The notes below the pieces were generated by a model. It ran no database searches, had not been told where the DNA came from, and worked only from the letters and a program-made list of their open reading frames with translations. 64,000 nucleotides of DNA from Heterodontus francisci (Eukaryota): assembly GCF_036365525.1 (NCBI RefSeq), contig NC_090399.1, positions 15,189,558 to 15,253,557 of the forward strand, written 5' to 3'. This document shows, in pieces, positions 9,192 through 61,698 of this stretch. Numbering within the stretch: the stretch's first letter is position 1; each line of letters opens with the position of its first letter. A program made the translations under genes and the position numbers.

Positions 9192-9308
9192 TCAATCGAT
9201 AGTTGTGTACTCGACATCATGTTCCTCACTGTTCAATGTCCTCGTATTCCCCTCTTGTTTTGTGTTCACTTTGAATATTTCCTCATCACTTCCGCGATTG
9301 GAACATAC
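9192..9308 (-). CDS. Gene A terminal coding exon VCSNRGSDEEIFKVNTKQEGNTRTLNSEEHDVEYTTID*
   Basis: Acceptor aattgctag; open frame and TGA position conserved with 50883-51011 apart from an in-frame 12-nt indel; terminal VEYTTI motif. Confidence 0.75.
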   Translation of the reverse strand, partial: VCSNRGSDEEIFKVNTKQEGNTRTLNSEEHDVEYTTID

Positions 9309-12300
9309 CTAGCAATTATTAGATTAAGATTAGATGCAATTCCCAATGCATGTAAATACAGCAACACCAACTTACATGTTTGTAGCATCCTTAAAGTAGA
9401 AACACGTTCCAAGATACTTGAATGACATATAATTAGAAAAGAAGGACAGAGTCATGATTACACGTTGGAGAAACAGACTGACAACACAAGGAGTGATCGA
9501 GATTGGTACTAGATAGGTTGGGCCGTAAGTGGCACACATTTTGAAGTTGAATGCACGATTTCGATGATGCCAACAAGGAGAAACGTATTGAAGGAGCAAA
9601 GATGGATCCTTTGGAGACACCCGGACTGACGGTTATGAGTAGAAAGCGCAGCCGTTGCTCGAGATGTCCTGGTTAAACTTCGATGATTATAGTAGAGCCA
9701 AGTAAGAGCTTTCCCACGGAGCTGAACTATAAAGAAGACATATTAGAGGAGGGATCGTGTGATAGACGTGTCAAAGTTTACAAGGAGGAGAAATAGCATA
9801 TCTTCGTCACGGTAGCAGCGAGTGTCACTTGTGACGTTGATCGGGATCGGAATTGTATTGTCGTACAGACAGAAAACTGGTTTGCGGGGAGATGGGTTCA
9901 GGTGTGAGAGGCGATGCACGTTAAGGGCCTTGGTGAGGAAAGGATGGTTGAAGATAGGACATGAGCTCGAAAGGATAGAAGAGTCAAAGATGCACTGCAG
10001 CAATTGGCCAAGGCTTCTTCCATAGCACCTCCTAAACCCTTACCTCTAACACCTAAAAAAACAAGGACAGCAAAAGCAGGGGAAACACCACATCTTTAAA
10101 CTCACATCCAAGCTGTACATCATTCTGACTCAGAAATATATCACCGTTCCTTCATCATTGCTGGCCCAAAGGCCTAGCACTCCCTACCTAACAGAACTGC
10201 AGATGCACCTGTGCAAGGAGTGCAGCGGTTCATGGATGCAGCTCAACACTGCCTGCTAAAGGGCAATTAGGAGTGGGTAATAAATATTGGCCTTGCCAGT
10301 GATGTCCACATCCTATAAATGAATAAATTAAAAGGTGTGATCTTAAGAAAGGGGCAACGGCAACGACTTTGAAATGTACCTATGTAAATATAATCATTTA
10401 TAATTAGTGGCTGAAATAAGTCCCAGGAAAGGAAGCTGGGTGATCAGGAGTTCAGTGGCAATGGAGGTTAAGAGAACAGGAAGCAAGTGTCATGCATGAG
10501 ATGAATTTGGAGTGGGTGTATGGAAACGGACAGAAATTAATGAGAGGCCAGATTTCAGGGAAATGATGGAGGCAGGAATGGGGAAGATTTGTCTTAGTAG
10601 ACAATGGGAAGATGGAGGTAATGATGCAATTATAGCTCCGCGAGAACGAATTCCATGAGTTACTTGCATTTTTTGTTAGAGATGAAAGCAGAGGTGGTGA
10701 GAAAAGTTCCTTATGAAGATCGTTGAGAAAATAAGACTGCAGTTATTTTTACCTGGCAGGATGATCTTAGAATAGTGTGTGGTTTCTGCTGTGGAAAGCG
10801 GAGCCCGTAAGAGTTTAATGTGGCAAGCAACATTTGGGAATAAATGGCTAATCCCGGTTGTGCCACGTACCGTCATCTTTGTCCCCGCTTGGAATTAAAG
10901 AAGCGAAGATGGAGGTCATGGCAGAGGGATCGAGTGGAATGAGAAATTGTTATGTTTGTATTGGGAAGAAGGGCACCAAATGCAAATCGGTTTATCAGGT
11001 TAGTGTTTCATGAGGTTGCCATATCGAAAACACGGCTGAAGTATTATCAGTGAAATTGTGACAAGAGGAGAAAAGGCACCACATTAAGGCATGTTTGCCT
11101 ACGCCATCATACTTAAATACTAAATGCAATGTTTGTGTTCATTGGCATGACACACGTTAATGCTATCCAACAGAATATATTACCACAATAACAATCCATG
11201 TACGATCCAATGTTTCCGGGTCAGTTGCAGTTTAATAGTCTGCAAGGTGAATTTTCCTCTACTCTGCTTAAACAACGCCCCTACACACAAAGTTCAGTAA
11301 AGGGATGCTTACTGTCCAAGTCTACTTATTTACTCTCGCACCTTATGTCCTCTGTGACTGAGATCACCAATTCAATACCAAATTGTACTTTTTGGGCGTT
11401 TTGAATGTTGTGAGTCAATGTCCATTCGGAAGTTTTGAACCCCTACAGTTAACAGAGAGAGGAATCTTTCCGTTCCTCATTCTGGGCGAGAGGTGAGTGC
11501 AGTCCATAATGCGGGCACATCAGATCTCCTTAAGCATTATTGTTGAACATAGAACATAGAACATAGAACATAGAACATAGAACATACAGCACAGAACAGG
11601 CCCTTCGGCCCACAATGTTGTGCCGATCCTTTGTCCTCTGTCAAGGACAATTTAATCTATACCCCATCATTCTCCTTTATCCATATACCTATCCAAAAGC
11701 CTTTTGAAAGTCCCTAAAGTTTCTGACTCAACAACTTCCCCGGGCAAGGCATTCCATGCCTCGACCACTCTCTGGGTAAAGAACCTTCCCCTGACATCCC
11801 CCTTATATCTCCCACCCTTCACCTTAAATTTATGACCCCTTGTAACGCTTTGCTCCACCCGGGGAAAAAGTTTCTGACTGTCTACCCTATCTATTCCCCT
11901 GATCATCTTATAAACCTCTATCATGTCACCCCTCATCCTTCTCCGTTCTAATGAGAAGAGGCCTAGAATGTTCAGCCTTTCCTCGTAAGACTTATTCTCC
12001 ATTCCAGGCAACATCCTGGTAAATCTCCTCTGCACCCTCTCCAAGGCTTCCACATCCTTCCTAAAATGAGGCGACCAGAACTGCACACAGTACTCCAAAT
12101 GAGGCCTTACCAAGGTCCTGTACAGCTGCATCATCACCTCACGGCTCTTAAATTCAATCCCTCTGCTAATGAACGCTAACACCCCATATGCCTTCTTCAC
12201 AGCCCTATCCACTTGAGTTGCAACTTTCAATGATCTATGCACATAGACCCCAAGGTCTCTCTGCTCCTCCACATGCCCAAGAACCATACCGTTAACCCAG

Positions 12301-15300
12301 TATTTTGCATTCATGTTTGTCCTTCCAAAATGGACGACCTCACACTTTTCAGGGTTAAACTCCATCTGCCACTTTTCAGCCCAGCACTGCAACCTATCCA
12401 AGTCCCTTTGCAGACGACAATAGCCCTCCTCGGTATCCACAACTCCACCAACCTTTGTATCATCTGCAAATTTACTGACCCACCCTTCGACTTCCTCATC
12501 CAAGTCGTTAATAAAAATCACAAACAGGAGAGGACCCAGAACTGATCCCTGCGGCACGCCACTGGTAACTGGGCTCCAGGCTGAGTATTTACCATCTAAG
12601 ACCACTCTCTGCCTTCTATCAGTTAGCCAATTCTTAATCCAACTGGCCACATTCCCCACTATCCCATGCCTCCTGACTTTCTCCATAAGTCTACCATGGG
12701 GGACCTTATCAAATGCCTTACTAAAATCCATGTACACCACATCCACTGGTTTACCCTCATCCACTTGCTTGGTCACCTGCTCAAAGAATTCAATCAGGCT
12801 TGTGAGGCAAGACCTACCCCTCACAAAACCGTGCTGACTGTCCCGAATCAAGCAGTGTCTTTCCAGATGCTCAGAAATCCTATCCCTCAGCACCTTTTCC
12901 ATCAACTTGCCTACCACCGAAGTAAGACTAACTGGCCTGTAATTCCCAGGGTTGTTCCTATTCCCTTTCTTGAACAGGGGCACAACATTTGCCACCCTCC
13001 AATCACCTGGTACCACCCCCGTCAGCAGAGAAGATGAAAAGATCATTGCCAGCGGCTCTGCAATTTCATCCCTTGCTTCCCATAACATCCTTGGATATAC
13101 CCCGTCAGGCCCGGGAGACTTGTCTATCTTCAAGTTATTCAAAAACCCCAACACATCTTCCCTCCTAACGAGCACTTCCTCGAGCTTACCAGTCTGCTTC
13201 CCACCGTCCTCTTCAGTAATACACCCCTTCTCATTCGTAAATACCGAAGAGAAGTACTCATTCAAAACCTCACTTATCTCTTCCGGCTCAACACACAGTC
13301 TCCCGCTATTGTCCTTGACCGGACCTACGGTCCCCCTAGTCATCCTCATATTTCTGACATACGCGTAAAAGGCCTTGGGGTTTTCTTTTATCCTACCCGC
13401 CAAGCATTTTTCATGCCCTCTCTTAGCTCTCCTAATCCCTTTCTTCAGATCCTTCCTGGCCATCTTGTATCCCTCCAGAGCTATGCCTGTGCCCTTTTTC
13501 CTCAACTTTATATACGCATCCTTCTTCTTCCTAACAAGACTCTCAACCTCTCTTGTCAACCACGGTTCCCTCACATGACCATCCCTTCCCTGTCTGACAG
13601 GGACATGCTTATCAATGGCCCCTACTATCTGCTCCTTGAAAAAGTTCCACATTTCGACCGTGCCCTTCCCTGCCAGCATATGCTCCCAACTTATGCTCCT
13701 CAGTTCCTGCCTGACAGCATCATATCTACCCTTCCCCCAATTGTAAACCTTGCCCTGTTGCACATACCTATCCCTCTCCATTACCACAGTGAATGCTACA
13801 GAATTGTGATCACTATCTCCAAAGTGCTCGCCCACCAACAGCTCTATCACTTGCCCTGGTTCATTACCTAGTACCAAATCCAATATTGCCTCCCCTCTGG
13901 TCGGGCAGTCTACATACTGAGTCAGAAAAGCTTCCTGGACATACTGCACAAACACTACCCCATCCAAACTATTCGATCTAAAGAGTTGCCAATCAATATT
14001 TGGGAAGTTGAAATCCCCCATAATTACTACCCTGTGACTTCTGCTCCTTTCCAAAATCTGTTTCCCAATCTGTTCTTCCACCTCCCTGCTGCTATTGGGG
14101 GGCCTATAGAAAACTCCCATCAAGGTGACTGCTCCTTTCCTGTTCCTGACCTCAACCCACAGTGCCTCAGTCGGCAGATCCTCCTCGAAAATTCTTTCAG
14201 CAGTTGTCATTACGTCTGGTTTCATTTTACTGCAAATAATAAGAACTTCTCTTATTTTGCAAGAAAACATAAGGAACAGAGGGAAAACTTCACAAGAATA
14301 TTTAGGATATTGAAAATACGTAGAGAAAAGAGAAATGCCAAAGTTGGAGATAATGGTTGGCGAAACAAAGATCTGTATCTCTGCGAAACACGCTGGTCGC
14401 TGTTTAACTATTACGATTTCGCTATAATGTGGGATAATTGCTCTGGCCGCAATGAGGAGCCTTAATGTTCACCGGAACCATCTAACATTGCACATACCGA
14501 ACATCTCATCATCCAATAACTCTTACTTGTGTCGTTGGCTGTATATTAGCTGCTGCTGTGAAAATGAAAGGAGAGAGAATGTGGGAGAATTACACAATGC
14601 AACACATAATAGCGCGCGCATACATATTGTAGATTCTTTCATATCAAATGAATTTGAATAAAATAATTTGCCATCGTATTTTTTAGATTTAGTTTGTTTT
14701 CATTAACCAGCAATAATAATCAACGTAGAATACATCATGGGAAGGCAATTACAACTCACGTACCACATATTATACTGGTTCCACGCTGATTCCTGTAATA
14801 ACAGAGATGATATTTGAATTTAAAATTTATGCACATTATGTTCTGAATAATCATTAATTAGATAAGATTTGCCATTTCCTGTACCTTTTCAGCCTCACGA
14901 TAACTGAAAGAAAAATAAGGTAGGCGTTAATACAACTGTTTTAAGATAATGACTTCGTGATGCTGTTCCATATTAAAATATCGTAAAATTGACTTTTCGC
15001 ACACCGACACATGAATAGATAGACCGTGCAGTGATTCTGATCACTATGTGTGCCGGCATTATAATGAATAGATGGACATTTCCTCCGATCATTATTTCTA
15101 ATGAGGTCCTAAGTGTGTTCTAAAATAATTGTTCATTCTAAACGCGTTTCCGATTACACTAGAAATGCTGACTGGCTCAAGAAAAGAATTAACTATATTG
15201 CTCATCGTAGCGGCCAGAGCAATTTTCTCGCTTTATAGCGAAAGCGTAATAGTTAAACAGGGGCCAGCGTGTTTCACGGAGATACAGACCTTTGTTTTGC

Positions 15301-18300
15301 CAAATCAGTCGAAATGCAAGAATTGTTGTGGTTATACACAGCAGCATCAACGCACGTTCCAGTAGGAGTATCAAGTTAATATTCTTGCTTTTTCCTCCCT
15401 GCATTCTTCCTGAAATAAGGAGTTGAAGTCAGTATTTTAAAATCTTACTTATTTATTGATACAGCACTGAAACAGTCCCTTCGGCCCTCCGAGTCTGTGC
15501 TGACCAACAACCACCCATTTATACTAATCCTACATTAACCCCACATTCTCTACCATTCTCCGACCACCTCTTGGGGCAATTTACAAAGGCCAATTTACCT
15601 ATCAACCTGCAAGTCTTTAGCTGTCGGCGGAAACCGGAGCACACGGTGGAAACCCATGCGGTCAAAGGGAGAGCTTGCAAACTCCACACAGGCAGTACCC
15701 ATAACCGAACCCGGGTCGCTGGAGCTATGAGGCTGCGGTGCTAATCACTGCGCCGCCCCATTTTGAGGATCCGCCGCTACTTTAGTGTAGGAAACGCGGC
15801 AGCCAAGTTGTGTACAGCAAGATTCCTCAAACAGCGATGTGAAGTGACAAGATCTTCTTTTTCGTGATGTTGATTGAGTGATAAATATTGGCCAGGACAC
15901 CGAGGATACCTTTCCTGCATTTCGTCGAGATAGCGTCATGGGATATTTTACATCCAGTTGAGTCTGCAAACGGTGTCTTGGTTTAAGGCTTCATCCAAAA
16001 CCTCCGGTACTGCAGCACTCCCTGCATACTGCACTGGGGACCACTTTGGGCTCCAGACTCTGGGGTGGGACCGTTATAACCAAAATATTAAAATGGAAAG
16101 AGGATAATTCCTACTCTACCGCGCTAGTATTAGCGCTTCAGCGATAATATAAGCAATATGGAGAACCACCCCCTACACCCCCACCACCCCCCCCCCCCCC
16201 CACCCCCAGCTCTATTACATTTCTGCATGTTCTGCTTAAAAGATTGACTCTTCATGAATTCTGGCGTCACTGGTAGCTCCCAAATGACAATTGTTTAACA
16301 TTGAGCCCAGTGGGTAAGAGTGGGCACTTGACGCAGCATCACAACCCAGCCCAGCCTGGTGGAAATGGACATTGGCCGGGACGCGGCACAAGAGTCATTG
16401 CATCCGTAGCCTGTTGTACACATGCGGTTTTCGGTTCCATTGACTTCAATGGGACTTCAATTATATTGACTTCAATAAAACAGAAAATGCGACGTGTTGT
16501 ATAACGAGCTGCATATGGGATTCACTGTGATTACTCTTGGATGCCACTTACGCCTCACTTCCAGTTTGGTGCCATTTCCATCTCTCACACCGGTTTCCGT
16601 TAAGCTTACACGACAGTAATAGGTGTCTGCGTCTTTCTCAGTCAAGTCGGAGATATTGATGAATATTCTGTTGTTGGTAAATGAATCACTGCCCGATTTT
16701 TCCAGCCGACCTTCATAAAATGGACTCTTGTCCAGTTTGTACCCATCCGGTTTACCCCGTGTCCAGTGAGCTGTGCCGATCAGGGTTACGTTTCCTTCAA
16801 AGTCCAGAGCACAGTTTAGTGTCACCGACTCCCCCTCAGCTGAAGTTAGAAAGGGAGGGAACTGGAAAACGGTGACATTCATCTTCCCACATGCTGAATG
16901 GAAACACTTTAACTTTAAAGGTGATAAGTAGTAAACGTCATTCCTCTTTAACAATTTTCGTTGGTGAAATTAATTGTCGTTTTACATTATATAGATACAG
17001 AGATCAAAAGCAAATAGCGGACATTTAAAAAGTCACACACAGAAAGTGCTGCAAATATCTATCAAATCAATCAGACTCTGAAAAAGGACAGGTTAACGTT
17101 TGGTTGTGTTGCTCCGCCCAATTGCCTTCTCTGCTGAAAAAAGAGCAAACTAATAAAATTCAATTGTAAGTCAATTACATGTGATATTGAATTCTATCAA
17201 ATTCATATTTCCGTTATCCTCGTTCATTCATTTTCTAATTCCATTTATTTTATACCAATGTGGGACAATATAGAACTTGTTTGACATTTCACCTTAGGCT
17301 TTCCTCATTTTACAAGGTACTACAGCAACATTTGTAAAATGGTGCAAATTTGAAAGAAGATCTGAACACATAGGCAGCCACTTATTTGGTTCTGCCCATA
17401 GTAGCATGTACATCTCGTGAAATCAGACGAGTAAAAAGGTCGTAAATGTTGCTTCCATGTATTGGCGGAAGGAAGTTGTTACGCTGACCCTCTGTCCTTT
17501 ATATCAATTAAGGTGATAACCCATTTATGTCGAACATGTGAATGTTTTCCCTGAAATTGAAGACAGATGCGAACACCATGTGAGCATGTGATCCCTCTCC
17601 TTACATTGTACTTATTGATGCAGCCACGTCTCACTCCACATGCGCGGATCACTGAAAGCTGGTGGACAGGGACACGCGGTAATGAAAGAGGTTAATGGAA
17701 TATTAGCCTTTATCTCAAGGAGACTGAGATAGAAAGGGAAGGATGTTATGATTCAGTTGTACAGAATCTTGCTCAGTCCTCATCTGGAGTAATTCTGGCT
17801 ATCAGGCATCAGGAAGGATGTGTTGGCCTTGAAGGTTGTGCAGCACAGATTCACTAAAATGATACTTGGGCTGTGAGGATTAAATTATATGGGGAGATTG
17901 TTTAAACGTGTCTTCCATTCCATTGACTTTAGATTATTGAGGATAGAGATGACGGAGCAGTTTAAAACGTTAAAAAGAACACAAGGGGGCAGATGCAGAG
18001 AAACTATTTCCTCTGGTGGGAGAATCTAGAACAAGGGGTATGATATTAAAATTAGAGCTAAGCCATTAAGGAGGTAAATCGGGAAGCTCTTTTTTACAGG
18101 TCATCTTTTAATTGCCGGTGGGATGATTTCCTCCGCTTTCTAAAATTTGAGAAAAAAAATGCAGCATGTGTTGCAAAGCTTAATGCTTCTGACAGAAAGG
18201 TCTATGTCAATAACTATGTTTCATCAGAAATTCCAATGCGGGAAAAATCGCACTATATTTGCGAAATCGGTACCCAGTTGGAGAGCGGAAATAATCCCCA

Positions 18301-19856
18301 GTGGACCCAAACAATGTATGAGGAAAATCTCAGAACACTAGGGGCGTAATTTTAGCTTCTGGCTATAATGGGACACAAGGGATGTTAAATTAGCTGCCCA
18401 TTATACACCTCACATATGTACACAAAATTAAAATAATAATAATGGTGTATTATTTCTTGTAGCTCATATTCCGACTCCGACTGGGTGCATGAAAGCGGAA
18501 ATTTCCCTGCACGCCCGCGCCTTCCAGTAAGTCAAAGTCAATAAACCAAATGCATGAGATGCAGCGAATGGGCGAGTTGGACATGGGGACACAGAAAGAA
18601 TGTGGACACTCCTTGCGAGTCCAATAGGGAGCGGGAAAGACAAATGTAGAAATGAACAGTGAGATACTGTAAGGAATCGAAGGATATACTGAGAAGTCAA
18701 TGAGAGAATGTGGTTGAATATCAGAGAGTGGCATTGAAAATGGGACAACAGAAGAGAAACAAAAAGGCAAGAAGGACAGGGCCAGAAAAACATAGGGTGA
18801 AAAGAAGGGGACAAGCAGTGGGACAGCTATAGGATTTAATACTGCTATATTGCTTTAATTTTGGGTATGAACAACGCGTAAGAAGAACTGCTTGTTCTGA
18901 CACTGGGAAGAGACCATTACTTACATGCAGTACAACTGGATTGGTAGAAAGATCCTACCTTCGTCAGAACATGTTGTGGAACACTTAAAGGAAAAGGCTC
19001 ACAAGGGGATGTTCACTGATGATTGCACAGTGTTGAATTCCATTGGAAATTCCTCAGATAATGAAGCAATCCGTGCGCGCGTGCAGCAAGACCTGGACAA
19101 CATCCAGGTTTGGACCAACAATTGCAAATAGCACAATTGCCAGCGAAGCTCACATACCGTGACTGAATTAAAACAAACGATTATGCGTTTATAAATAAAA
19201 AAAAACAATGAATTTGTATAGCGCCCCCATCACACCGTCGAATTATATAGAAGTATTTCATAATTACTTTTTGGAGTACAGCCGCTGCTGCTATGAAATC
19301 AAATGCAACAATCAATTTCTGTCAGTAACATCCCACAATTGGCTGGAATCGAACGAAGAGTTTCTCCTGGAATTTCTGCGGCTGGCTCGCTTCATCACCA
19401 GCCGTAACTTCGGCGGAAGATCGGTTAAAGGAAACAACAGCCGATCCTCCACCACGTTACACGCGAGTTCGAGAGAATCTCGTGGAAATTCTACATTTGT
19501 GTTCAAGTCTCGAACACACTATAATCCTGTTTAGAGGAACCTGGTCTAATTGCTCAGCACAGTGACATCACTATTTCGTAGTTAATGCGCCAACTTTCTG
19601 GAAGCTGCAGAAAAGATTGTTAACAGTTGGTACCCGTTTGCGTTTTTATGACTATTTCAAACAGCAAAGTTATCAATTAGAAGCTGGAAGTGTTTTCTTA
19701 AAAGCAAGTCTAGTTTCTGCGAAGGTTACAATTTAAATTCGACACTGTTCTCTACGCTATCGAAATTCTCCATAAGCGGCAAAAATCAATTAACTCACCC
19801 GTGCATATTGCAAAGAAACTCAACAGCATTAAAGTGAGCTGTTGACTTAATAGCAT
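9192..19856 (-). CDS. NCR3: Gene A: NKp30/NCR3-like single VJ-IgSF type I membrane receptor, about 237 aa; predicted join 19799-19856,16552-16893,15290-15409,14885-14903,14764-14792,14527-14555,9192-9308. Family-level call, not proven ortholog
   Basis: All exons bounded by AG/GT; phases chain 1,1,1,2,1,0 to a stop (714 nt). The V domain aligns by eye to human NKp30 (IGxxxWxR, GRL, DxxxYxCRV, GNGTxLxV). Exons 1-5 and 7 have paralogous counterparts in gene B. Confidence 0.75.
9540..10900. mobile_element. Decayed L2-like fragment with nested family-B 3' end (about 9985-10330)
   Basis: Purine-rich L2-like sequence; same nesting at 54170-55560. Confidence 0.55.
11547..14203 (-). mobile_element. 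Young 5'-truncated CR1 (HER1-like) LINE with uninterrupted ORF2 (APE C-terminal part plus RT) and (TATGTTC)6 tail
   Basis: ORF 11667..14270 with GDFNFP, SDHN, PQGSVLGP and FADD; empty site in paralog at about 56165. Confidence 0.97.
14361..14460 (+). repeat. Inverted copy of 15200-15299 (end of TM exon, donor and intron)
   Basis: About 86/100 identity to the reverse complement; absent at the paralogous site near 56335. Confidence 0.9.
14527..14555 (-). CDS. Gene A cytoplasmic micro-exon 6 (29 nt, AAANIQPTTQ) with tandem CAG acceptors
   Basis: Long pyrimidine tract plus cagcagcag, donor CAA|gtaaga; ends in phase 0, matching the terminal exon. Confidence 0.55.
14764..14792 (-). CDS. Gene A cytoplasmic micro-exon 5 (29 nt, NQRGTSIIC)
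   Basis: ttattacag acceptor; TG|gtac donor conserved in paralog 56844-56872. Confidence 0.55.
14885..14903 (-). CDS. Gene A cytoplasmic micro-exon 4 (19 nt, VIVRLKR)
   Basis: tttttctttcag acceptor, AAG|gtacag donor; needed for the frame chain. Confidence 0.6.
15290..15409 (-). CDS. Gene A exon 3, stalk plus TM with charged residues (LILLLERALMLLCITTTILAF)
   Basis: Acceptor ttatttcag, donor AAG|gtctgt, 120 nt, phase 1-1; paralog at 57361-57480. Confidence 0.85.
15455..15760 (-). mobile_element. tRNA-derived HE1-like (V-SINE) element
   Basis: A/B-box-like head gcagtgattagcac...gggttcg; V-domain-like core; CR1-type 3' tail; absent from paralog. Confidence 0.75.
15785..16080 (-). mobile_element. 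Deu-domain (SacSINE1-like) SINE; paralog at 57560-57960
   Basis: gcagccaa..cagcaag..cacaaacagc core, also at 20430-20760, 26700-27060 and 38290-38690. Confidence 0.65.
16552..16893 (-). CDS. Gene A exon 2, VJ-type Ig V-set domain (NKp30-like)
   Basis: Within ORF 16472..16954. B-strand Cys (VTLNC), C-strand Trp (AHWTR), DADTYYC and J-like GNGTKLEV in one 342-nt phase 1-1 exon; acceptor ttccattcag, donor C|gtaagt. Confidence 0.95.
17640..18100 (+). mobile_element. Decayed CR1 fragment shared with paralog at about 60040-60425
   Basis: Similar to CR1 3' coding region. Confidence 0.7.
19799..19856 (-). CDS. Gene A exon 1, signal peptide MLLSQQLTLMLLSFFAICT
   Basis: ATG at 19856, hydrophobic 19-mer, phase-1 donor G|gtgagt; conserved at 61641-61698. 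Confidence 0.85.
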
Positions 19857-20429
19857 CTTCTATGTATTTGTGGAGAGGTTGGAGGTGCTGAGCCCAGGGA
19901 CCAGCAACGTTAGCAAGGTGATCAGAGTATTTAGCACCAACCCACAAAGAGTGTGAATGGAATTATTTGCGGTCTCTTGTTGACGATACAGGATACACGT
20001 ACACTTTACTGCTCCGTAGGATTCTAGGCTTTCGAGCAGATTTTTTTCAAACTTCGGGAATTGTGTAAGAATGCAGCGTTGATGCTGTTTGATAAGCACA
20101 CAGCATAAGAAATACAGCATTAAACGCATCGATATTATCAATTAGCAATGCGCGGTTTGATGTTCAGACTGTAGATTTCATGTCCCCCAAGCTGTATATT
20201 GTTCAGTGACTATGGTCTTGAAGTTGAATAAAGGAGTCGAAAGCAGCGACTAGTTAGATTACAGATGTGACCCAAAGTTTCCTCTCGGCTTATCGTGGAT
20301 CCATGATTTCAGAGACAAAGTTACCAAGGTAATGCTAATGCTTTTCTACTGGGGCCAGCTACCCCCACGTATCAGCTGTTAAAAGCCAGACAGCAACCCA
20401 ACTCCTGCACAGGTTTGCAGAACCTTGGG

Positions 20430-21160
20430 AATTGTGTCAGCATCCTTGCCTCTAAATCAGGAGGTTGTGAGTTCCTTCCTCAGCAGAGCTCAGAACAAAA
20501 ATCTAGGCTGATGTTAAAGGAGAGCGGCACTGTCCGAGGTGCTGTCTTTCCGAGAACAGTTAAACCGAGACCTCGCCTGCTCCTCCTCAGGTGGACGTAA
20601 ACGATCCTCCGGCTCTAACCAATATTTATCCTCAATCACAAACAGCTTACCTGGTCATTATTACATTACTGTTTGCGAAACCTTACTGAGCTCAAATTGT
20701 TGATCCCTGCATTTCAAAAAGTGCTTCATGAGCTGTAAAGCACTGTGGAACATCGTAAGAGGCGAATCTTTTTGTCTTACGAGGAAAATTGGACAGACTA
20801 GGCTTGTATCCGTTGGAATTTAGAGGAGTAAGAAGTGACTTGATTGTAACATATAAGATCCTGAGGGGTCTTGACAGGGTGGATGTGGAAAGGATGTTTT
20901 CCCTTGTGGGAGAATCTAGAACTCGGGGTCACTGTTTAAAAATAAGGGGTCGCCCATTTAAGACAGAGATGACGAGAATTGTTTTTCCCTCAAAGGGTCG
21001 TGAGTCTTTGAAATTCTCTTCCTCAAAAGGCGGTGGAAGCAGAGTGTATGAATATTTTTAAGGCAGAGGTAGATAGATTCTTGATAAGCAAGGGCGTGAA
21101 AAGTTATCGGGGTAGGTGAAAATGTGGAGTAACCAGTTCAGCCAGGAACTTATTGAATGC
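20430..21160 (+). mobile_element. Deu-type SINE (20430-20760) followed by CR1 3' fragment (20775-21160)
   Basis: DRLGLYPLEFR, ESRTRGH motifs. Confidence 0.75.
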
Positions 21161-22582: not shown

Positions 22583-22584
22583 AC

Positions 22585-29170: not shown

Positions 29171-29639
29171 AAAGACAGGTGATTGTAATTGAAGGAACTA
29201 AGTGTAGCTATTTCCAACTTGGTGGTATTAAGTTAGAAGACAGGCTCCAGAACGTCTACAACTGAAGAAGGTCACTCACCTGAAACGTTAACGCTGCTTC
29301 TCTCTCCACAGATGCTACCAGACCTGAAACGTTAGCTCACTGATTTTTTTTTTAGGTTCACCCCCTTCAACTGCAGGTAATGTCCTTGTGTTCTAGTCTT
29401 CAGAACAAAGTGAACTAGCTTGTCATAGTCCAAGTTTTCCAGTCCCTGTAGTATTCTAAAAAGCTGCATTTGCTGACAACGCTATCACCAGGTCGCGCTG
29501 CAGTGGCACAAGCGTAAATGAAGCATGTGCCGCTAAAACGTCACAGCCTGTGACTTCAGGCAGCTGCCAGGACTAAAGATGGCGCTGCTCAAATAATCAC
29601 ACGAAGGCAACCTAACCTAAACACATGACAGCACACAAT

Positions 29640-50704: not shown

Positions 50705-50710
50705 TTTATT
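50705..50710 (-). terminator. Candidate polyadenylation signal AATAAA of gene B
   Basis: About 175 nt after the stop; conserved with gene A. Confidence 0.55.
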
Positions 50711-50882
50711 TTGCAACTGGGAAAGTAGGAACAACTTCATATTTACATACATTCATAGCCAACTGGTTGAACAATTGTTGGCAGGTTAGTAGATAAGATG
50801 GCGGTCAGTGTGCTGGATACTGGTTAGAATTGCTGAGTGAGAGGGGCGGGTTTTGAGGTCTTCCAGGTTTCTTCCCAGAGCT

Positions 50883-51011
50883 TCAGTTGATGCTGGTGTT
50901 CTCGACATGCTGTGCCTCATTGTTTACTGTCATTGTCTTCCCCTTTTGCTTTATGTTCAATTCGGCGTAATGCAGGGAAACTGCCTCATCACTGTCACGA
51001 TTGGAATATAC
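50883..51011 (-). CDS. Gene B terminal exon with ITIM: VYSNRDSDEAVSLHYAELNIKQKGKTMTVNNEAQHVENTSIN*
   Basis: Acceptor aattattag; LHYAEL fits the ITIM consensus [ILVS]xYxx[LV]. Confidence 0.8.
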   Translation of the reverse strand, partial: VYSNRDSDEAVSLHYAELNIKQKGKTMTVNNEAQHVENTSIN

Positions 51012-54000: not shown

Positions 54001-57000
54001 GCTCTGACATCACTGCCTTACTATTTTTACTCTAATACTGTCTGTGTCTCGCAATTCTTTGTGCACCTTAGTTTTCCCCTGTAATGTTATCTCCTGGTTG
54101 ACAGTCCCCTGCCAAGTTAGCTTAAAACCTCCCAAAAGCACTAGCAAACCGCCACGCAAGGACATTGGTTGAATGCATGGCTTCGATTATGCCAACAAGG
54201 AGAAGCATGTAGATGAGGGAGCAGGAGATGGATCCTTTACAGACTTCTGGGCTAACGGTTGTGGGTAGAAAGAGTCGCCATTGCTAGAGAGGTCCTGGTT
54301 AAAATTAGATGAGTATAATACAGCCAAGTAACAGCAGTCCGAGAGAGCTTAAGAACAGAGAAGAGATGTTGGAGAAAGGATCCTGTGATAGACGTGTCAA
54401 AGTTTACGGGGAGAAGAAATAACATATCATAGTCACAGGAGCAGAGAGTGCCACACGTGATGTTGATCAGGTTCGTTTTGTATTGTGGTAGAGGCAGAAA
54501 ACTGATTTGAGAGGAGATGGGTTCAGGTCTGGGAGGCGACAGCACGTTAAGGGCCTTGGTGAGGAAAGGATGGTTGAAGATAGGACATTAGCTCGAAAGT
54601 GAAGAAAGGTCAAAGATGCACTGCAGCAAATCGCTAAGGCTTCTTCCACAGCACCTCCTAAACTCGCTTCCTCTATCACCTAGAAGAACAAGGACAACAG
54701 GCGCAGGGAAACACCACCATCTTTAAAATCTGCTCCAAGCAACACATCATTCTGACTTAGAAATATATCGCTGTTCCTTCATCATTTCTGGTGCAAAAGG
54801 CAAGAACTCACTGCCCAACAGCACTGTAGATGCACGTGTACACGGACTGCAGCGGTTCATGGATGTCCCTCAGCACCACCTGCTCAAGGGCAACTCGGAG
54901 TGGGCAATAAATAGCGGCCTGGGAAGAGATGCCCATATCCTGTGAATGAATAAATAAAGTTACGAGATCTTGACAGAGGGATAATGGCAACAACTTTGAA
55001 AGGTAGGGAGACAATCCCTGCTTAAATTTAACTATTTAAAATATCGGCTAAAAATAGTGCCAGGAGGAGACGTTGGATGATCGGGAATTTAGTGGGAATT
55101 GAGGGTAGGAGATCAGGAAGTAAGTCTCATGGATTAAACTAATTTGGAAGGGGTGTGGGCAAAAGGGCAGATGCTAATGTAAGGCCAGGTGTCAGGGCAA
55201 TAATGAAGGCAGGACTGGGAAAGATATGGCTGAGTACATAAAGGGAAGATGGAGGCAGCGAAGTAGCTGAACAGATGGTCTCTACCTTCGGTAGAATGAA
55301 TTCCATGAGTTCCTCGCACTTGTTTTTAGAGATGAGAGCGGAAGTGGTGGGGTAAGCTATTTAAGGAGACCGCAATTATTGTTACCTTCCAGAATGATTC
55401 TAGAATAGTGGATTGTTTCTGCAGAAGTAAGTGGAGCCCGGAAGAGTTTAATGCGGCAAGCCACATCTAGGAGTAAATTGCTAATCTGGTTTCTGCCCAG
55501 TTCCATCATCTTTGTTCCCCCCTTAGATTTAAGGAAGCTTGGGGGTCATACCAGAGAGATCCACTGGAATAAGAAATTGAGAGGTTTGTATTGGGAAGAA
55601 GGGCACCAAATGCAAATCGCCTTTTTTTTCAGATTAGTGTTTCATGAAATTACCATATGGGCAACACGGCTAAACTATTAGTAGAGAAATTGTTTGTGAC
55701 AAAAAGAGAAAAGACACCACATTAATGTTACACCACCATTCTCCAATGATAAATGCAATGTTGAGTTCATTAGGATGACAGACATTAACGCTATCCAATC
55801 GAATATATTACCTCAATAACAATCCATTGCAGAATCCAATATTTCCGAGTCAGCTACATTATTACAGTCTGCAAGGTGAATTTTCCTCTACTCTGTATGA
55901 ACAACACCCTTACACAAAAAGCTCAGAAGCGGGATCCTACTGTCCAAGTCCATTTATTTATTCTGGTAGCTTATGACCTGTGCAATTGAGATTACCAATT
56001 CAATACAAATTGTACTTTTTGGGGTGGTTTCGAAATTGTGAGTCAACGTTTATTGGAAGGTTGTGAACCTAACAATCAACAGAGAGAGAGGAGTCTTTCA
56101 GCCTATCAGTCTGGGCAAAAGTTAATTTAGGCCATAACGTGGGCGCAGCATGTCTCTTGAAGAATTATTCTTGATTATCATTACGTTTTGTTTCATTTTC
56201 TGGCAATTATAAGCACTTCCCTTATTTTGCTAAAACATTCGTAACAGCGATAAAGCATCACAAGCAGATCGAGTATATTGAAAATACGTAGAAAACTGAA
56301 TAATTCCATCGTTGGAGATAATGGGTAGCGAATTACTGAAGCCTCATTGTTCACTGGAATTATCTATCATTGCACATACCAAACATCTGAATATTGAACA
56401 GCAGCAAGTGCAAACATGAACAGTCCGTTAACACCTTTTCTGTACTAATGCTTTGTCTTTCAACACACCATTAACATATTGTTTGCCTTTTCTCCATGAC
56501 CTTTTGGTCAGCTATGTGGCCTTGTCCAATCTGCACCTTCTCCTTTGTTATCTCTTGCCCCACCCCCGGCTCACTTACTTATAACCTGTGACATTTTTAA
56601 TATTTGTCAGTTTCGAAGAAGGGTCACTGACCCGAAATGTTAACTCTGCTTCTCTTTCTACAGATGCTGCCAGACCTGCTGAGTGGTTCCAGCATTTCTT
56701 GTTTTTATTTCAGATTTCCAGCATCCGCAGTATTTTGCTTTTAAAATAATGTGTAACTATTTTTATATGTAGTTTGTTTCCATTAACCAGCAATAATAAT
56801 CAATGTAGAATGCATCAATTGAAGGCAATTACATCTCGCGTACCATATATTGTACTGGTTCCACTGCGATTTCTGTAATGAGAGGTGATATTTGAAATTA
56901 AAAATGACGGACATTATGTTCTGAATAATTATTAATTCCGTAAGATTTGACATTTCCTGTAACTTTTCAGCCTCGGGATACCTGAAAGAAAAATAATACA

Positions 57001-60000
57001 GGTTTAATATTATTGTTTTAAGGTAATTACTTCCTGTTTGCTACCAAAAAAAAGTAAAATTGGCCTTTAGCACACCAACACATGAATCGATAGGCCGTGC
57101 AGTGATTCTGATCACTATATGTACCGGCATTATAATGAATAGATGGACATTTCCTCCGATTATTATTTCTAATGAGGTCCTAAGTATGTTCTAAAATAAT
57201 TGTTCATACTAAACGCGTTTCTGATTGCACTAAAAATGCTGACTAGCTCCAGAAAAGCATTAACTATACTGCTCCTCACCGTGGCCAGAGAAATTGTCCC
57301 ACATTATAACGAAAGCGCAATAGTTAAACAGGAATCAACCTGTTTCATAGAGATACAGACCTTTGTTTTGCCTGATCAGTCGACATCTAAGAATCGTTGT
57401 GTTTATACCCAGCAACATGAACGCACCTCCCAGTGCAAGTATCAGGTTCATATTGGCGTTCTTTCCTTGCTGCATTCTTCCTGAAATAATGAGTTGAAGA
57501 CAATAGTTGTATGTTTTAATATGATTTTGCTCGCATTAAAACAAAGAGCACGGTTGTAAAAAAAAGTCTTGCATTTCTATAGCGCCTTTTACGGCCTAAG
57601 GAAGTCCCAAAGCGCTTCACAGCCGATGAAGTTCTCGTGAACTGTATGCACTGTTGTAGGAAACGCAGCAGCCAATATGCGAACAGCAAGGTCCCACAAA
57701 CAGCAATGTGACAATGACCAGATCTTTTTATTTTAATGATGCTGATTGAGAGATAAATATTGACCAGGACTCGGAGAATACCTTCGCTGCACTTCACCGA
57801 AATAGGGTCATGGGATCATTTACTTGAGTGTCGAGAAGGGGACTTGGATTCAGGTTTCATCCAAAAGACGGCACCTCCGACAGTGCAGCACTTCCTCACA
57901 CTGCACGGGAAAGTCAGCATGGATTTTTGGGCTCCAGTCACTGGAATGGCACCATACTGAACAAAATAGCAAAGCGGAAACGGAATGTTCCTACTCTCAT
58001 GCGATGCTATTAGCACTTCAGTGACAATACAAGCAAAATCTAGAAAGCCTCCCCCTACTTCTATCAAATGTCGCTGTGCTCTCCCTAAGGTATTGCCTCT
58101 CCATGGTCTTTGGCGCCACCATGAGCTTGCAGATGGTGATTTTTTAACATTGAGCCCAGCGGATCTGCTTGTCGACTTGACTCTAAGCAGCATCACAACC
58201 TAACCCAGCCTGGTCAACATTGAACGTGGGCGAGGACGCCACGCGACACGGGCGGTATTGCATCGTACCTGTTATACACCGCGGTTTCGCTTCCTTTGAC
58301 TTCAATGGGACGTGAATTAAATTCACATCAATAAAACGGAATATCCGGCGTGTTGTATGACGGGCTGCAGGTGCGATTTAGTATGTTTTGCGCCTGCAGC
58401 TGTGTCCAATTTCAACCCCGCACCCTGCTACCCCCCCCCCCACCCCCACCCCCAGCCCCAGCCCCAGCCCCACCCCTAGATGTACACATAAATATAAATA
58501 TATTCCATTGCACAACATGCAAGATTTGAGAATGTCTGAAGGTGCTTCTCTGAACGATTTCCCTGTCCCTGGTGTCCAGTGAGCTGTGTCGATCGGGGGT
58601 AGATTTCTTTTTAAAGACCACAGCACAGTTCAGTGTCACCGGCTCCCCCTCAGCTGCAGTTAGAAAGGGAGGGAACTGGAAAACGGTGACATTCATCTTC
58701 TCACCTGCTGAATGGAAACACTGTAACTTTAAAGGTGATTTCCCCGCCCCTGGTGCCCAGATTCCTGCGGCCAATTGTCCTCTGGTCAGTTAATATATCG
58801 CAGTTTCCAAATTGACACAAGGACCTTTCTGGCCTGTGACAATCGAGTACGGCTATAAAATTAGAACACCTGCTTAATAAATGATTATTCTAAGTTTCAA
58901 CTTACGCCTCACTTCTAGTTGGGTGCCATTTCCATCTCTCACTCCTACTTTAAACAGGCGGACCCGACAGTAATAGGTGTCTGCGTCTTTTTCAGTCAAG
59001 TCGGAGATTTTGATGAATATTCTGTTGTTGGTAAATGAATCACTGTCTGATTCCTCCAGCCGACCTTCATAAAATGGATTCTTGTCCAGTTTGTACCCAT
59101 CCGGTTTACCCCGTGTCCAGTGAGCTGTGCCGATCAGGGATAGGTTTCCTCCAAAGTCCACAGCACAGTTCAGTGTCACCGACTCCCCCTCAGCTGCAGT
59201 TCGAAAGGGAGGGAACGGGAAAACGGTGACATTTATCTTCCCACCTGCTGAATGGAAACACTGCAACTTTAAATGTGATAAGTAGAAAACGTCATGCCTC
59301 TCTAACGCTGCCCGACAATTTTCGTTGGAAAAGGTAATTATCATTTTACATTAGATAGATACAGAGATCAAAAGTACAACAGCGGTCACTGAAAACGTGA
59401 AGCACATTATACATACACAGGAAGTGCTAAAATATCTAGCAAATCAGTCAGGCTCTGAAAGGGAAGGACAGGTTAGCGTTTGGTTGAGTTGCTCCGCCTT
59501 CTCGTCTGAACCAAGAGCTAAACTAATAAAATTCAAGTGTAGATCAATTACCTGTGATATTGAATTCTATGAAATTGATATTTTCATTATCCTCGTTCAT
59601 TCAACCACTGTTTTCTAATTCCAGTTGTTTTCTACCAATGTGGGACAATATAGAACTTGTTTTACATTTCGCCTTAGGCGTTCCTCACTTTACAAGGAAC
59701 TACAGCAACATTTGTAAAATGGTGCGAATTTGAAAGAAGTTCTGTGATGATATGCCGATATGTAAACACATAGTCAGCCACTTATTTGGTTCTGGCCATG
59801 GTTTCATTTACATCGCGTGAAATCTGACACGTAAAAAGAAGTTTAAAGTCGTACATGTTCCTTCTATATATTGGCGAAAGGAAGTGTAGATGTCCTTTAT
59901 TTCAATTAAGGTGTTCACTCATTTATACCGGACATGTGACTGCGTTCAGTAAAATTGAAGACAGATGTTAATACCATATCAGCAATCGCACCCTCTCCTT

Positions 60001-61698
60001 ACATTGCGCTTATTGCTACGGCCACGTCTCACTCCACATGCGTAGCTCACTGAAAGCTAATGGATGGGGACACAAGATAATGAAAGAGACTAATGGAATG
60101 TTAGTCTCAAGGGTATCAGTCCTCATCTGGAGTAATACTGGCTATCAGGTATCAGGAAGGATCTGTTGGCCTTGAAGGTTGTGTAGTACAGATTCACATA
60201 AAATGATACCTGGGCTGTGAGGATTAAATTATGATGAGTGATTGTTTCAACGTGTCTGCTATTCCCTTGAGTTTAAATGATGGAGCGGTTTAAAATGTTA
60301 AAAAGGGCACGATGGGGTAGATCCAGTGAAACTACTTCCTCTGATGGAGAATCCAGAACAAGGGGGCACGATGTTAAAATTAAAGCGAGGCCATTAAGGA
60401 CATAAATCAGGAAGCAGTTTTTTCACTGGTCATCTTTTAATTGCTAGTGGGATGATTTTCTCCGCTTTATCTCTGGTCACATTGTAATACAAATGCGTCA
60501 TGTGTTCCAATGTTTCTGGCAAAAAGTCTATCTCAGCAGATCTATAGTTTCATCAGAAGTTCTAATGAAAAAAGTCACTATGTGTGAGAAAGACAGATGC
60601 ACAGATAAACAGTGAGGTACTGAGAAATGGAATTGGAGAAGATACTAAGAAGTCGACGAGAGAATGAGGTTGAGTATCAGAGCGTGGCGTTGCGAAAGCG
60701 ACAGCAGAAGAGCAACAAAAAGACAGCGGGATGTAAAGGGTTAGGAAAAGAAAGGGGGAGAAGAAGGCGACAAGCAGCGGAACAACTCCAGGATTTACTA
60801 CTGCTATATCGGTTTAATTTTTGGGTAGGAACAACACGTAAGAAGAACTGTTTGTTCTGATAGTGGGAAGAGACCATTATTTGCATGCAGTACAATCGGA
60901 TTGGTAGAAAGATCCTGGTTTCGCCAGAACATTGTGTGCAAAATATAAAGGAAAAGAATGTTCAGTGATGATTGTACAGTGTTCAGTTCCAGGCTTGAGC
61001 TGATAATTGCAAATAACACAAGTGCCAGCAACACTCACATCCTGTGAATGGATTAAAAACAAACAATTATGCGTTTATAACTCGAATAAATGGTGAGTTC
61101 CTAAAGCGCCCCATCTCATCGTCGACTTAAACAAACTTGCTTCATAATTTTTTGGGAGTACAGCCACTACTGTTATAAAATCAAGCGCAGCAGTCAAATT
61201 TCTGTCAGGAACATCCCACAATCGTCTGAAACCTAACAAAGAGTTCCGCCTGGAATTTCTGCTCATTCCATCGACCGGCCGTAACTTCGGAGGAAGATCG
61301 GTAAAAGAAACAGCAGCCACTCTTCCACCCAAGTTACACGGGTGATCGGGAGAATCTCGCGGAAATGTTGTGTTCAAGTCTCTAACACATTGTAGTCCTG
61401 TTTCGACGAGCCTGGTCAATTGCTCAGCACAGTGACATCACTATTTCATAGTTAATGCACCAACTTTCTGTAAGCCGCAGTAAAAAAATGTTAACAGTTG
61501 GTACCCGTGAGCGTTTTTATGACTATTTCAAATAGTAAAATTACCGCTTAGAAATCAGAAATGTTTTCTTAAAAGCAAGTCTAGTTTCTGTGAAGGTTAC
61601 AATTTAAATTAATGCTGCTCGCTACCCTATCATAACTCACCCGTGTGTATTGCACAGAAAATCAATAACATTAAAGTGAGCTGTTGACTTATTAGCAT
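50883..61698 (-). CDS. NCR3: Gene B: ITIM-bearing NKp30/NCR3-like VJ-IgSF receptor, about 225 aa; predicted join 61641-61698,58906-59247,57361-57480,56844-56872,50883-51011
   Basis: Paralog of gene A; V domain differs at 18 of 114 aa (hand count); the chain is in frame (678 nt) if micro-exon 4 is skipped; ITIM LHYAEL. Confidence 0.7.
51260..54165 (-). mobile_element. Long decayed CR1 present only in copy 2 (last intron of gene B)
   Basis: GVFYRSP, EVLNKY and KFNAEKYKVIHFG remnants; paralog contiguous near 9500-9540. Confidence 0.85.
52652..53115. repeat. Perfect 215-bp inverted repeat with 34-bp spacer
   Basis: Arms 52652-52866 and 52901-53115; no mismatch seen. Confidence 0.95.
56390..56745 (+). 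mobile_element. Penelope pLTR insertion replacing the region of micro-exon 6
   Basis: Matches 42240-42585; flanks align to about 14507 and 14660 of copy 1. Confidence 0.85.
56844..56872 (-). CDS. Gene B micro-exon 5 (EIAVEPVQYM if exon 4 is skipped)
   Basis: AG/GT conserved with gene A exon 5. Confidence 0.5.
56963..56981 (-). pseudogene. Gene B micro-exon 4 with donor changed from GT to TT
   Basis: Paralog of 14885-14903; AAAAG|ttacag here versus AAAAG|gtacag in A. Confidence 0.55.
57361..57480 (-). CDS. Gene B exon 3, stalk plus uncharged TM (LILALGGAFMLLGINTTIL)
   Basis: Same splice sites and length as 15290-15409. Confidence 0.8.
58572..58739 (-). pseudogene. Truncated, frameshifted 5' half of a third V exon inside gene B intron 2
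   Basis: Encodes AGEKMNVTVFQFPPFLTAAEGEPVTLNCAVV then shifts frame; DNA homology ends near the Trp codon; acceptor retained. Confidence 0.9.
58906..59247 (-). CDS. Gene B exon 2, VJ-type Ig V-set domain
   Basis: Within ORF 58874..59344; canonical C, W, YYC and GNGTQLEV; 342 nt, phase 1-1. Confidence 0.95.
61641..61698 (-). CDS. Gene B exon 1, signal peptide MLISQQLTLMLLIFCAIHT
   Basis: End of ORF 61630..61839; donor G|gtgagt. Confidence 0.85.

Follow-up and report, generated by a model that had tools for sequence, protein, structure and literature searches.

Two genes of the NCR3 (NKp30) family, here called A and B, were found on the minus strand of a 64,000-nucleotide stretch of the Heterodontus francisci genome (the window). 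They are probably lineage-specific tandem duplicates of an inhibitory-type shark NCR3 subtype; judged from their sequence, gene A would be half-converted and gene B either remodelled or disabled. The two paralogues are collinear (A, 8069-20700; B, 49799-62579), with 74-87% nucleotide identity, position 9192 being the last base of the gene A stop codon and 61698 the A of the gene B ATG. The V exons are 90.6% identical as DNA and 84.1% identical as protein (95/113 residues), matching the value of about 84% given in an earlier note on this DNA, and the adjacent genes have the closely similar ectodomains expected of paired receptors. The dN/dS value between A and B was 0.52 for the V exons and 0.78 for the transmembrane (TM) exons; TM exons evolve fast in the shark NCR3 family. 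Neither A nor B was present as an annotated protein in a search of 5.8 billion proteins, in which the neighbouring paralogue was found. The exons of both genes are listed in Table 1.

Table 1. Exons of genes A and B and their main features (positions in the window).
Feature	Position	Strand	Description
Gene A exon 1	19799..19856	-	ATG and signal peptide MLLSQQLTLMLLSFFAICT(G); donor GG|gtgagt, phase 1; aligns with shark homologue leaders
Gene A exon 2	16552..16893	-	single-exon VJ-type V domain, J-like GNGTKLEV; acceptor ttcag|CA, donor GGC|gtaagt
Gene A exon 3	15290..15409	-	short stalk, TM LILLLERALMLLCITTTILAF, RLIWQNK anchor; Glu-Arg, judged derived, 15359-15354
Gene A exon 4 (cyt1)	14885..14903	-	19-nt micro-exon, (V)IVRLK(R); donor AG|gtacag intact; RNA joints 15290>14903, 14884>14791
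Gene A exon 5 (cyt2)	14764..14792	-	29 nt, NQRGTSIIC; spliced in RNA contig
Gene A exon 6 (cyt3)	14527..14555	-	29 nt, (A)AANIQPTTQ; donor CAA|gtaaga; RNA joint 14764>14555
Gene A exon 7	9192..9308	-	tail VCSNRGSDEEIFKVNTKQEGNTRTLNSEEHDVEYTTID, stop; 12-bp in-frame deletion at 9276/9275; VEYTTI 9215-9198
Gene B exon 1	61641..61698	-	leader MLISQQLTLMLLIFCAIHT(G)
Gene B exon 2	58906..59247	-	VJ-type V domain, open frame; FG loop RLFKV (SLTET in A)
Gene B exon 3	57361..57480	-	stalk and TM LILALGGAFMLLGINTTILRC; Gly-Gly, judged ancestral, 57430-57425
Gene B cyt1 micro-exon	56963..56981	-	donor GT changed to TT (56962-56961)
Gene B cyt2 exon	56844..56872	-	29 nt
Gene B terminal exon	50883..51011	-	VYSNRDSDEAVSLHYAELNIKQKGKTMTVNNEAQHVENTSIN, stop; LHYAEL 50975-50958; distal tyrosine lost, VENTSI 50906-50889

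Gene A is an intact, transcribed gene of seven exons (sum 714 nt, 237 codons), all of which are open and flanked by canonical AG/GT sites. The TM exon is separated from the tail exon by three micro-exons of 19, 29 and 29 nt; the corresponding segments, cyt1, cyt2 and cyt3, are visible in homologue proteins, and all were located in gene A. The tail frame requires these micro-exons, as direct splicing of the TM exon to the tail exon would give ...GMFQSRK and a stop in A and ...GIFQS and a stop in B. The leader-VJ-TM-tail plan of the earlier note included neither these micro-exons nor the distal VEYTTI of A. RNA mapping, which that note had proposed as a check, gave a 176-nt spliced contig (run X1) that aligned with 0 mismatches to 15395-15290 > 14903-14884 > 14791-14764 > 14555, with zero depth in the intron bins and joints reading CT..AC on the plus strand, i.e., GT..AG on the gene strand. 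The contig covers 15290-15395 of the TM exon, the Glu-Arg (ER) codons included, and joins it to cyt1, cyt2 and cyt3, but it ends 22 nt into cyt3, before the terminal exon, so that the V and tail exons lie beyond its span; it is a single contig of low depth (2.9) from one sample. The splice from cyt3 to exon 7 is predicted from the homologues, and the V and TM exons are presumably joined within one molecule.

By their V domains, both genes belong to the NCR3 family, as had been proposed. The Pfam V-set model matched both V exons (E = 4e-11 for A, E = 1e-9 for B), each of which encodes a single-exon, non-rearranging VJ-type domain with a J-like motif (GNGTQLEV in B). In PDB searches four human NKp30 chains ranked on top, both with the gene A V exon (E = 5e-10) and with a shark-subtype profile (E = 1e-10); with the latter, NKp30 led the next match by about 5 bits and SIRP and VNAR by about 10. 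The V domain is accordingly nearer to NKp30 than to other V-set proteins, the margin of 5-10 bits over antibody and SIRP V domains being modest. SIRP V domains were the next non-antibody matches in the PDB after NKp30. The closest proteins were the horn shark NCR3-like proteins XP_067865596-600 (91% over the V domain), and the nurse shark "Natural cytotoxicity triggering receptor 3" (NCR3) was 75% identical to the V domains of A and B. In the V tree, which lacks mammalian NCR3, CD28/PD-1, CD300 and NITR sequences, A, B, nurse shark NCR3 and the horn shark NCR3-like proteins all fell into one clade, within which A, B and horn shark XP_067865596 grouped together (support 85/95).

The shark NCR3 genes (nurse shark NCR3, reportedly treated by Kinlein et al. 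in 2021, and horn shark XP_067865596-600) follow the same plan of leader, single-exon VJ domain, TM, micro-exons and tail as A and B, with V domains 75-91% identical to theirs and shared tail motifs. All the members of the subtype retrieved have a Gly-Gly TM, whereas gene A has Glu-Arg and has lost the proximal ITIM to the 12-bp deletion; gene B differs from them by the loss of cyt3 and of the cyt1 donor.

The TM of gene A reads LILLL-ER-ALM (15374-15345; E, GAA 15359-15357; R, CGT 15356-15354) and that of gene B LILAL-GG-AFM (57445-57416; GGA GGT), all on the minus strand and with the motifs and codons originally described. The Gly-Gly was invariant in six of six homologues (Heterodontus, Ginglymostoma, Chiloscyllium, Scyliorhinus, Mustelus and Heptranchias), and the Arg was missing from gene B and from all six. 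Since Gly-Gly is invariant in six species, and A, B and XP_067865596 form one clade, this comparison indicates that the ER of gene A is derived within its subtype and not ancestral. The earlier suggestion that the Arg could be ancestral was therefore abandoned, and the direction of change is now resolved. The approximate hydrophobicity sum of the gene A TM was +0.29 with ER and about -3.5 with Gly-Gly restored, the homologues ranging from -0.9 to -3.8; outside the E and R, its hydrophobicity equals that of the homologues. The Arg is located 14 residues above the RLxxQxK anchor, as compared with 15 both in the horn shark Arg-TM subtype (XP_067865589) and in Xenopus OCT67900. It is directly adjoined by the Glu, which could neutralise it or have another purpose.

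The tails of the two genes differ as well. In agreement with the earlier description, LHYAEL is present in B and the proximal ITIM is missing from A, owing to an in-frame 12-bp deletion relative to B. In cyt2, gene A has Cys where several homologues have Tyr, and two of its three tail tyrosines are lost. The distal VEYTTI, which fits the ITIM consensus and occupies the place of the tail motif that is best conserved in the subtype, is kept in A, B reading VENTSI at the same place. An activating member would combine a basic TM residue with an ITIM-free tail; gene A has the Arg but keeps VEYTTI. Loss of the proximal motif alone is no sign of activation, because the nurse shark orthologue is without the proximal tyrosine and has kept the Gly-Gly TM. 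The tail motifs of the horn shark paralogue (SQQYAKV and AEYATI) are not canonical ITIMs, and the notion of an inhibitory ancestor therefore rests on other species.

Gene B shows the Gly-Gly TM and LHYAEL expected of an inhibitory member, but its cyt1 donor reads TT, and the whole of 49001-58000 yielded no counterpart of cyt3. Only when cyt1 is skipped does LHYAEL come into frame; this skip (19 nt) and the missing cyt3 (29 nt) together remove 48 nt, and the tail thereby stays in frame. At a nucleotide divergence of about 10-20%, the approximately 225 codons of the gene contain neither a stop nor a frameshift. Its V domain forms the longest branch of the V tree and its TM is the least hydrophobic of the compared set, both of which fit decay. 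With the distal tyrosine, the cyt1 donor and cyt3 lost and the tail nevertheless in frame, gene B may have been disabled recently, or it may be an inhibitory receptor in remodelled form.

In the history proposed for this pair, the ancestral subtype would have been inhibitory in type, with a leader, a single-exon VJ-type V domain and an uncharged TM with an invariant Gly-Gly, followed by three cytoplasmic micro-exons and a tail exon bearing xxYAKV as its proximal ITIM and xEYATI as its C-terminal motif. In gene A, Glu-Arg would have entered the outer third of the otherwise well preserved hydrophobic TM by two point changes (GGA GGT to GAA CGT), and the gene would have been left without the cyt2 tyrosine and, through the 12-bp deletion, without the proximal ITIM, VEYTTI still standing at its end. 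Gene A, having gained a charged TM and lost tyrosines while retaining one ITIM-like motif, would thus be a transitional or bifunctional receptor and not a purely activating one; its Arg may recruit an Asp-bearing ITAM adaptor of the FcR-gamma/CD3-zeta type, and its VEYTTI may still recruit SH2 phosphatases. Gene B would have kept the ancestral TM and the proximal LHYAEL, but neither the distal tyrosine nor the cyt1 donor nor cyt3. A bolder form of this history, held only tentatively, is that in gene A the NKp30-type membrane Arg was recently and independently invented anew within an inhibitory subtype of NCR3, at nearly the depth that it has in shark and frog NCR3 relatives with an Arg TM, the tyrosine motifs then being split between the copies and Glu-Arg serving as a functional site of adaptor binding or dimerisation.

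It is rather doubtful that birth-and-death drift in a large multigene family accounts for the ER of A and for the lesions of B, which would then be neutral or slightly deleterious changes of redundant copies, with no new signalling mode and with B a pseudogene or becoming one. The ER could be tolerated drift, since the TM exons of this family evolve fast, but the rest of the gene A TM is fully hydrophobic, which makes the two charged residues a specific change and not general decay. The low depth of gene A expression, and the lack of annotation of both genes where the neighbouring paralogue is annotated, are in line with drift; against it stand the seven open, canonically spliced exons of A, their splicing in RNA and the V-exon dN/dS. 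For gene B, the long V branch, the weak TM, the dead donor, the lost exon and the lost conserved C-terminal tyrosine have to be set against its uninterrupted codons and two lesions that cancel in frame.

A clean division of labour, in which A would signal solely via an adaptor on its TM Arg and B solely via its ITIM, is unlikely. The depth of the Arg gained by A is that usual for receptors coupled to FcR-gamma/CD3-zeta, and two of the three tail tyrosines are gone, yet the tail is full-length, ends in the most conserved motif of the subtype and is accompanied by a Glu next to the Arg. B retains Gly-Gly and a canonical ITIM, the latter in frame only by exon skipping; the nurse shark NCR3 without the proximal tyrosine, despite its Gly-Gly TM, also speaks against such a division, while the 84% identity of the ectodomains and the occurrence of both short-tailed forms with R/K in the TM and ITIM forms in the wider family would suit it. 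Of the activating/inhibitory NCR3 pair with opposite signalling signatures that the earlier note had envisaged, there remain recent NCR3 paralogues with similar ectodomains and differing TM and tail signatures; the opposition itself is not supported as proposed, A having a tail motif that fits the ITIM consensus and an acidic TM residue, and B depending on exon skipping for the frame of its ITIM, with a dead cyt1 donor and no cyt3. That Glu-Arg mediates TM-TM association (e.g., through reciprocal E-R salt bridges, either within a homodimer or to a second NCR3 paralogue) in place of binding an ITAM adaptor is speculative and quite improbable: in frog relatives with an Arg TM a Glu does precede the Arg by three residues (MEVLR, MEVVR, VEITR), and classical adaptor-coupled receptors usually have a lone basic TM residue, but the frog E-x-x-R forms have tails of 3-4 residues, typical of adaptor-dependent receptors.

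The half-converted state proposed for gene A may be compared with several known systems. In KIR, Ly49, SIRP alpha/beta and CD33-Siglecs, as in A and B, similar ectodomains are combined with differing TM and tail modules, and an inhibitory ancestor gave rise to the form with the charged TM, as read here for A. Their activating members lack any ITIM and usually the whole tail, whereas gene A keeps both its tail and an ITIM-like motif. A basic TM residue and a retained ITIM-type tyrosine motif occur in one chain in KIR2DL4, NKp44 and chicken CHIR-AB, the combination found in gene A; these receptors belong to unrelated Ig families (LRC, TREM-like), and we know of none with an acidic residue adjacent in the TM, unlike A. 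Closer in kind are the amphibian and bichir NKp30-like (XMIV-type) genes (Xenopus OCT67900, Spea XP_053330074, Mixophyes XP_075042038 and Polypterus XP_039594836), with single VJ domains and with Arg-TM forms with tails of 3-8 residues as well as ITIM forms (LHYAEI, INYAEI). They show a paired logic like that of A and B within one family, but are distant from them in sequence and their activating forms are truly tailless, whereas A and B would be a young duplicate caught midway.

Human NKp30 shares with A and B the VJ-type V domain with GNGT(R/K)L, and its TM Arg, like that of A, follows an LLL run in the outer portion of the helix. This Arg pairs with CD3-zeta/FcR-gamma, as the Lys of NKp44 does with DAP12, a lone basic TM residue being usual for adaptor coupling in the NCRs (PMC5371597). 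The V domain of human NKp30 is only about 30% identical to those of A and B and its tail is without an ITIM of their kind; the Arg of A, in contrast, would have arisen independently from Gly-Gly and has a neighbouring Glu.

The locus reveals no new kind of system. Both receptors with Arg or Lys in the TM and ITIM-bearing ones already occur among the annotated relatives of horn shark, frog and bichir. NKp30 is, to our knowledge, the only natural-killer receptor that can be followed through all jawed vertebrates, and the shark NCR3 genes are already known as a diverse multigene family. To these the locus adds a young duplicate pair of readable polarity, from Gly-Gly to Glu-Arg with a stepwise loss of tyrosine motifs, and a gene model in which the frame of the tail is set by three micro-exons, a point of importance when genes of this family are annotated. 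With this pair, one can also ask in a simple way if two point mutations suffice for an inhibitory-type receptor to become coupled to an ITAM adaptor. If the bolder history given above is true, A, B and XP_067865596 would form a step-by-step series from inhibitory to adaptor-coupled receptors in the oldest jawed vertebrates.

A six-frame motif search recovered all the transmembrane (TM) and ITIM motifs that the earlier note had quoted for the two NCR3 (NKp30)-like genes A and B, and all lay on the minus strand. The reported feature is bounded at 9192 by the stop codon of gene A and at 61698 by the start codon (ATG) of gene B, and no N runs were found across the window. Comparison of the window with itself showed a collinear tandem duplication (8069–20700 against 49799–62579) with an identity of 74–87%, which confirmed the paralogy of the two genes. 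Neither gene contained stops or frameshifts, and the dN/dS values between A and B were 0.52 for the V exon (dS 0.16) and 0.78 for the TM exon. The region 29600–31400, between the two genes, is occupied by a purine-rich, strongly G-skewed minisatellite with a unit of about 32 bp (GAGAGAGCAGCGA followed by a G-run), higher-order periods of 130–488 bp and a local GC content of up to 63%.

Homology searches were run exon by exon. The V exons of A and B have canonical splice sites (acceptor ttcag/CA, donor GGC/gtaagt) and match the Pfam V-set model. A protein search with the V ORF of gene A gave as closest match the horn shark "natural cytotoxicity triggering receptor 3-like" proteins XP_067865596-600 (91% over the V domain), followed by nurse shark NCR3 (75% identity) and proteins of Chiloscyllium, Scyliorhinus and Mustelus; A and B themselves were not returned as annotated proteins in this search. 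When the A V exon was searched against the PDB, the four best matches were human NKp30 chains (E = 5e-10), and a profile built from five shark homologues ranked the same four chains first (E = 1e-10), ahead of an antibody chain by about 5 bits and of SIRP and shark VNAR domains by about 10 bits. The NCR3-family assignment was upheld by these matches, and A and B constitute a real, young gene pair of this family. Shark NCR3 is reportedly linked to the MHC, a linkage attributed to Kinlein in 2021.

The TM exon is entered and also left in phase 1, and the tail exon needs entry in phase 0, so that direct TM-to-tail splicing would truncate the protein six or seven residues further on (GMFQSRK and stop in A, GIFQS and stop in B). 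The four-exon leader-VJ-TM-tail plan of the earlier note was rejected on this ground and, for gene A, also because three micro-exons, cyt1, cyt2 and cyt3 (19, 29 and 29 nt), intervene and a spliced RNA contig runs through the first two into the third. The proteins of the shark homologues bear VILRLKR, RNxSGTxxxY and xxNxQPxTQ between TM and tail. With the micro-exons included, the seven exons of gene A total 714 nt, that is, 237 codons and a stop.

Positions of motifs and cytoplasmic micro-exons in genes A and B
Feature	Position	Strand	Basis
Gene A TM, LILLL/ERALM	15374-15345	minus	six-frame motif search
Gene A cyt1	14903-14885	minus	tblastn and inspection; AG/GT sites
Gene A cyt2	14792-14764	minus	tblastn and inspection; AG/GT sites
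Gene A cyt3	14555-14527	minus	tblastn and inspection; AG/GT sites
Gene B TM, LILAL/GGAFM	57445-57416	minus	six-frame motif search
Gene B cyt1	56981-56963	minus	
Gene B cyt2	56872-56844	minus	
Gene B LHYAEL	50975-50958	minus	six-frame motif search

Three sequencing runs of one sample cover part of the window, and their reads were aligned to positions 14450–20000 of gene A. A contig from run X1, 176 nt long at depth 2.9 and free of mismatches, spans 15395–15290, 14903–14884, 14791–14764 and 14555. The ends of every skipped segment read CT..AC on the plus strand and GT..AG in the sense of the gene. The depth in the intron bins was zero except at high-copy repeats, so the sequenced material behaves as RNA. 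The ER-bearing (Glu-Arg) TM exon of gene A is therefore transcribed, its splicing matches the homologue-based model exactly, and the RNA confirms part of the seven-exon structure. Of the splicing between TM and terminal exons that the earlier note had envisaged, the contig contains the joined series from the TM exon through cyt1 and cyt2 into cyt3, but it stops before exon 7 and, at its other end, short of the V exon. A contig of run X3 (16551–16634) carried three mismatches, did not continue into the TM exon of A and probably derives from a paralogue. Within intron 2 of A, the contig depth at 15380–15750 and 16124–16309 was extreme in all three runs, with a maximum near 3e5; these stretches probably represent SINE-like repeats that are either strongly expressed or present in very high copy number. 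Much of the 5.2-kb intron 6 of A consists of an uninterrupted LINE ORF of 933 codons (11670–14468, minus strand, gene-sense orientation) encoding an endonuclease and a reverse transcriptase (RVT_1, E = 2e-36; Exo_endo_phos_2, E = 1e-10).

The earlier note had left open the direction of the TM change and allowed that the Arg might be ancestral. In the V-domain tree, A, B and the annotated horn shark paralogue C (XP_067865596) formed one clade (support 85/95), A and C being nearest (92%) and B having the longest branch. Since the other members of this clade and the other sharks have Gly-Gly (GG), the ER pair is derived in A, where it amounts to two nucleotide changes (GGA GGT to GAA CGT), and within this subtype an ancestral Arg is contradicted. 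The absence of a proximal ITIM from A, as described in the earlier note, was confirmed and is due to a deletion. The losses of tyrosine motifs are reciprocal between A and B.

States of the TM doublet and tail motifs in genes A and B, paralogue C and other sharks
Character	A	B	C	Other sharks	Derived in
TM doublet	ER	GG	GG	GG in 5/5	A
cyt2 tyrosine site	Cys	Tyr	Tyr	vary	A
Proximal motif	lost by 12-bp deletion	LHYAEL	SQQYAKV	I/V/L-x-YAKV; nurse shark SICNAKV	A
C-terminal motif	VEYTTI	VENTSI	AEYATI	xEYATI	B

On an approximate hydrophobicity scale, the TM of A gave a sum of +0.29 as it stands; putting GG back in place of ER would bring it to about −3.5, a value that the homologues also span (−0.9 to −3.8). 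This indicates that the two charges are a specific change and that the helix has otherwise been maintained; the sum of B, +1.96, was the weakest. The FG (CDR3-like) loop differs in four of five residues between B (58939–58966, RLFKV) and A (16585–16612, SLTET), and since C has SLMET the change is placed on the lineage of B.

In gene B, the donor of cyt1 has changed from GT to TT, cyt2 is intact, and no counterpart of cyt3 was found by blastn with word size 7 in 49001–58000. The two lesions cancel in frame: omission of the 19 nt of cyt1 and the 29 nt of cyt3 shortens the message by 48 nt, so that the tail exon, LHYAEL included, remains in frame, and cyt2 is read in a different frame as EIAVEPVQYM. 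A cryptic downstream donor for cyt1 (AAAT/gtcaaa) was discarded, as it would put a TAA at the cyt2 junction. Gene B may be an inhibitory receptor that has been remodelled, or else a copy in decay.

The 5′ half of the V exon recurs as an additional, incomplete copy at 58572–58739 (minus strand, acceptor ttccattcag), in the intron of B that separates the V and TM exons. The copy shares 91% identity with the V exon of A and likewise with that of B; it then diverges and reaches a (GGGGCT)n-like, G-rich tract near 58420–58480. It could act as a decoy exon or be a relic of unequal exchange. Upstream of the terminal exon, a B-specific insertion of 3.2 kb includes two ORFs on opposite strands (52718–53049) with the same peptide (ETKRQYEKRLTTNIKGNPKAFYRHINSKRVVKGG...), which points to a retroelement fragment duplicated in inverted orientation. 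Short minus-strand ORF segments read MNEDNENINFIEFNIT in B (59553–59600) and MNEDNGNMNLIEFNIT in A (17180–17227). The B segment is identical in 16 of 16 residues to the alternative first exon of the horn shark NCR3-like isoforms X2/X3 (XP_067865597/599), and on this basis A and B may each have an alternative leaderless exon 5′ of the V exon.

With respect to signalling, the Arg of A is placed 14 residues above the RLxxQxK anchor on the cytoplasmic side, against 15 residues in the Arg-TM relatives of horn shark and Xenopus. An outer-third TM position is typical of FcR-gamma/CD3-zeta-coupled receptors (NCRs are covered in PMC5371597), and the Arg of A would be expected to bind an Asp-bearing adaptor. 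LHYAEL and VEYTTI would recruit SH2 phosphatases. The activating/inhibitory pair proposed in the earlier note agrees with the TM Arg of A and with GG and LHYAEL in B, but fits less well with the VEYTTI and full tail of A and with a B frame that needs cyt1 skipping. Since A has kept its full tail together with an ITIM-consensus motif, it resembles KIR2DL4, NKp44 and CHIR-AB more than a classical activating partner.

An exhaustive profile search gave 458 relatives, ten of them identified by name. The same 74.5-Mb contig carries additional NCR3-like genes of horn shark, among them XP_067865594, with a Lys in the TM and a tail without motifs, and XP_067865589, whose TM contains an Arg. In Polypterus, an NCR3-like protein combines a TM Arg with an 8-residue tail, and proteins of Xenopus and other frogs have either an E-x-x-R TM with tails of 3–4 residues or ITIMs, for example LHYAEI. 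In public annotation, forms with a charged TM and forms with an ITIM thus already coexist across the NCR3-like family. The intact inhibitory-type partner in the H. francisci genome may be the annotated paralogue C.
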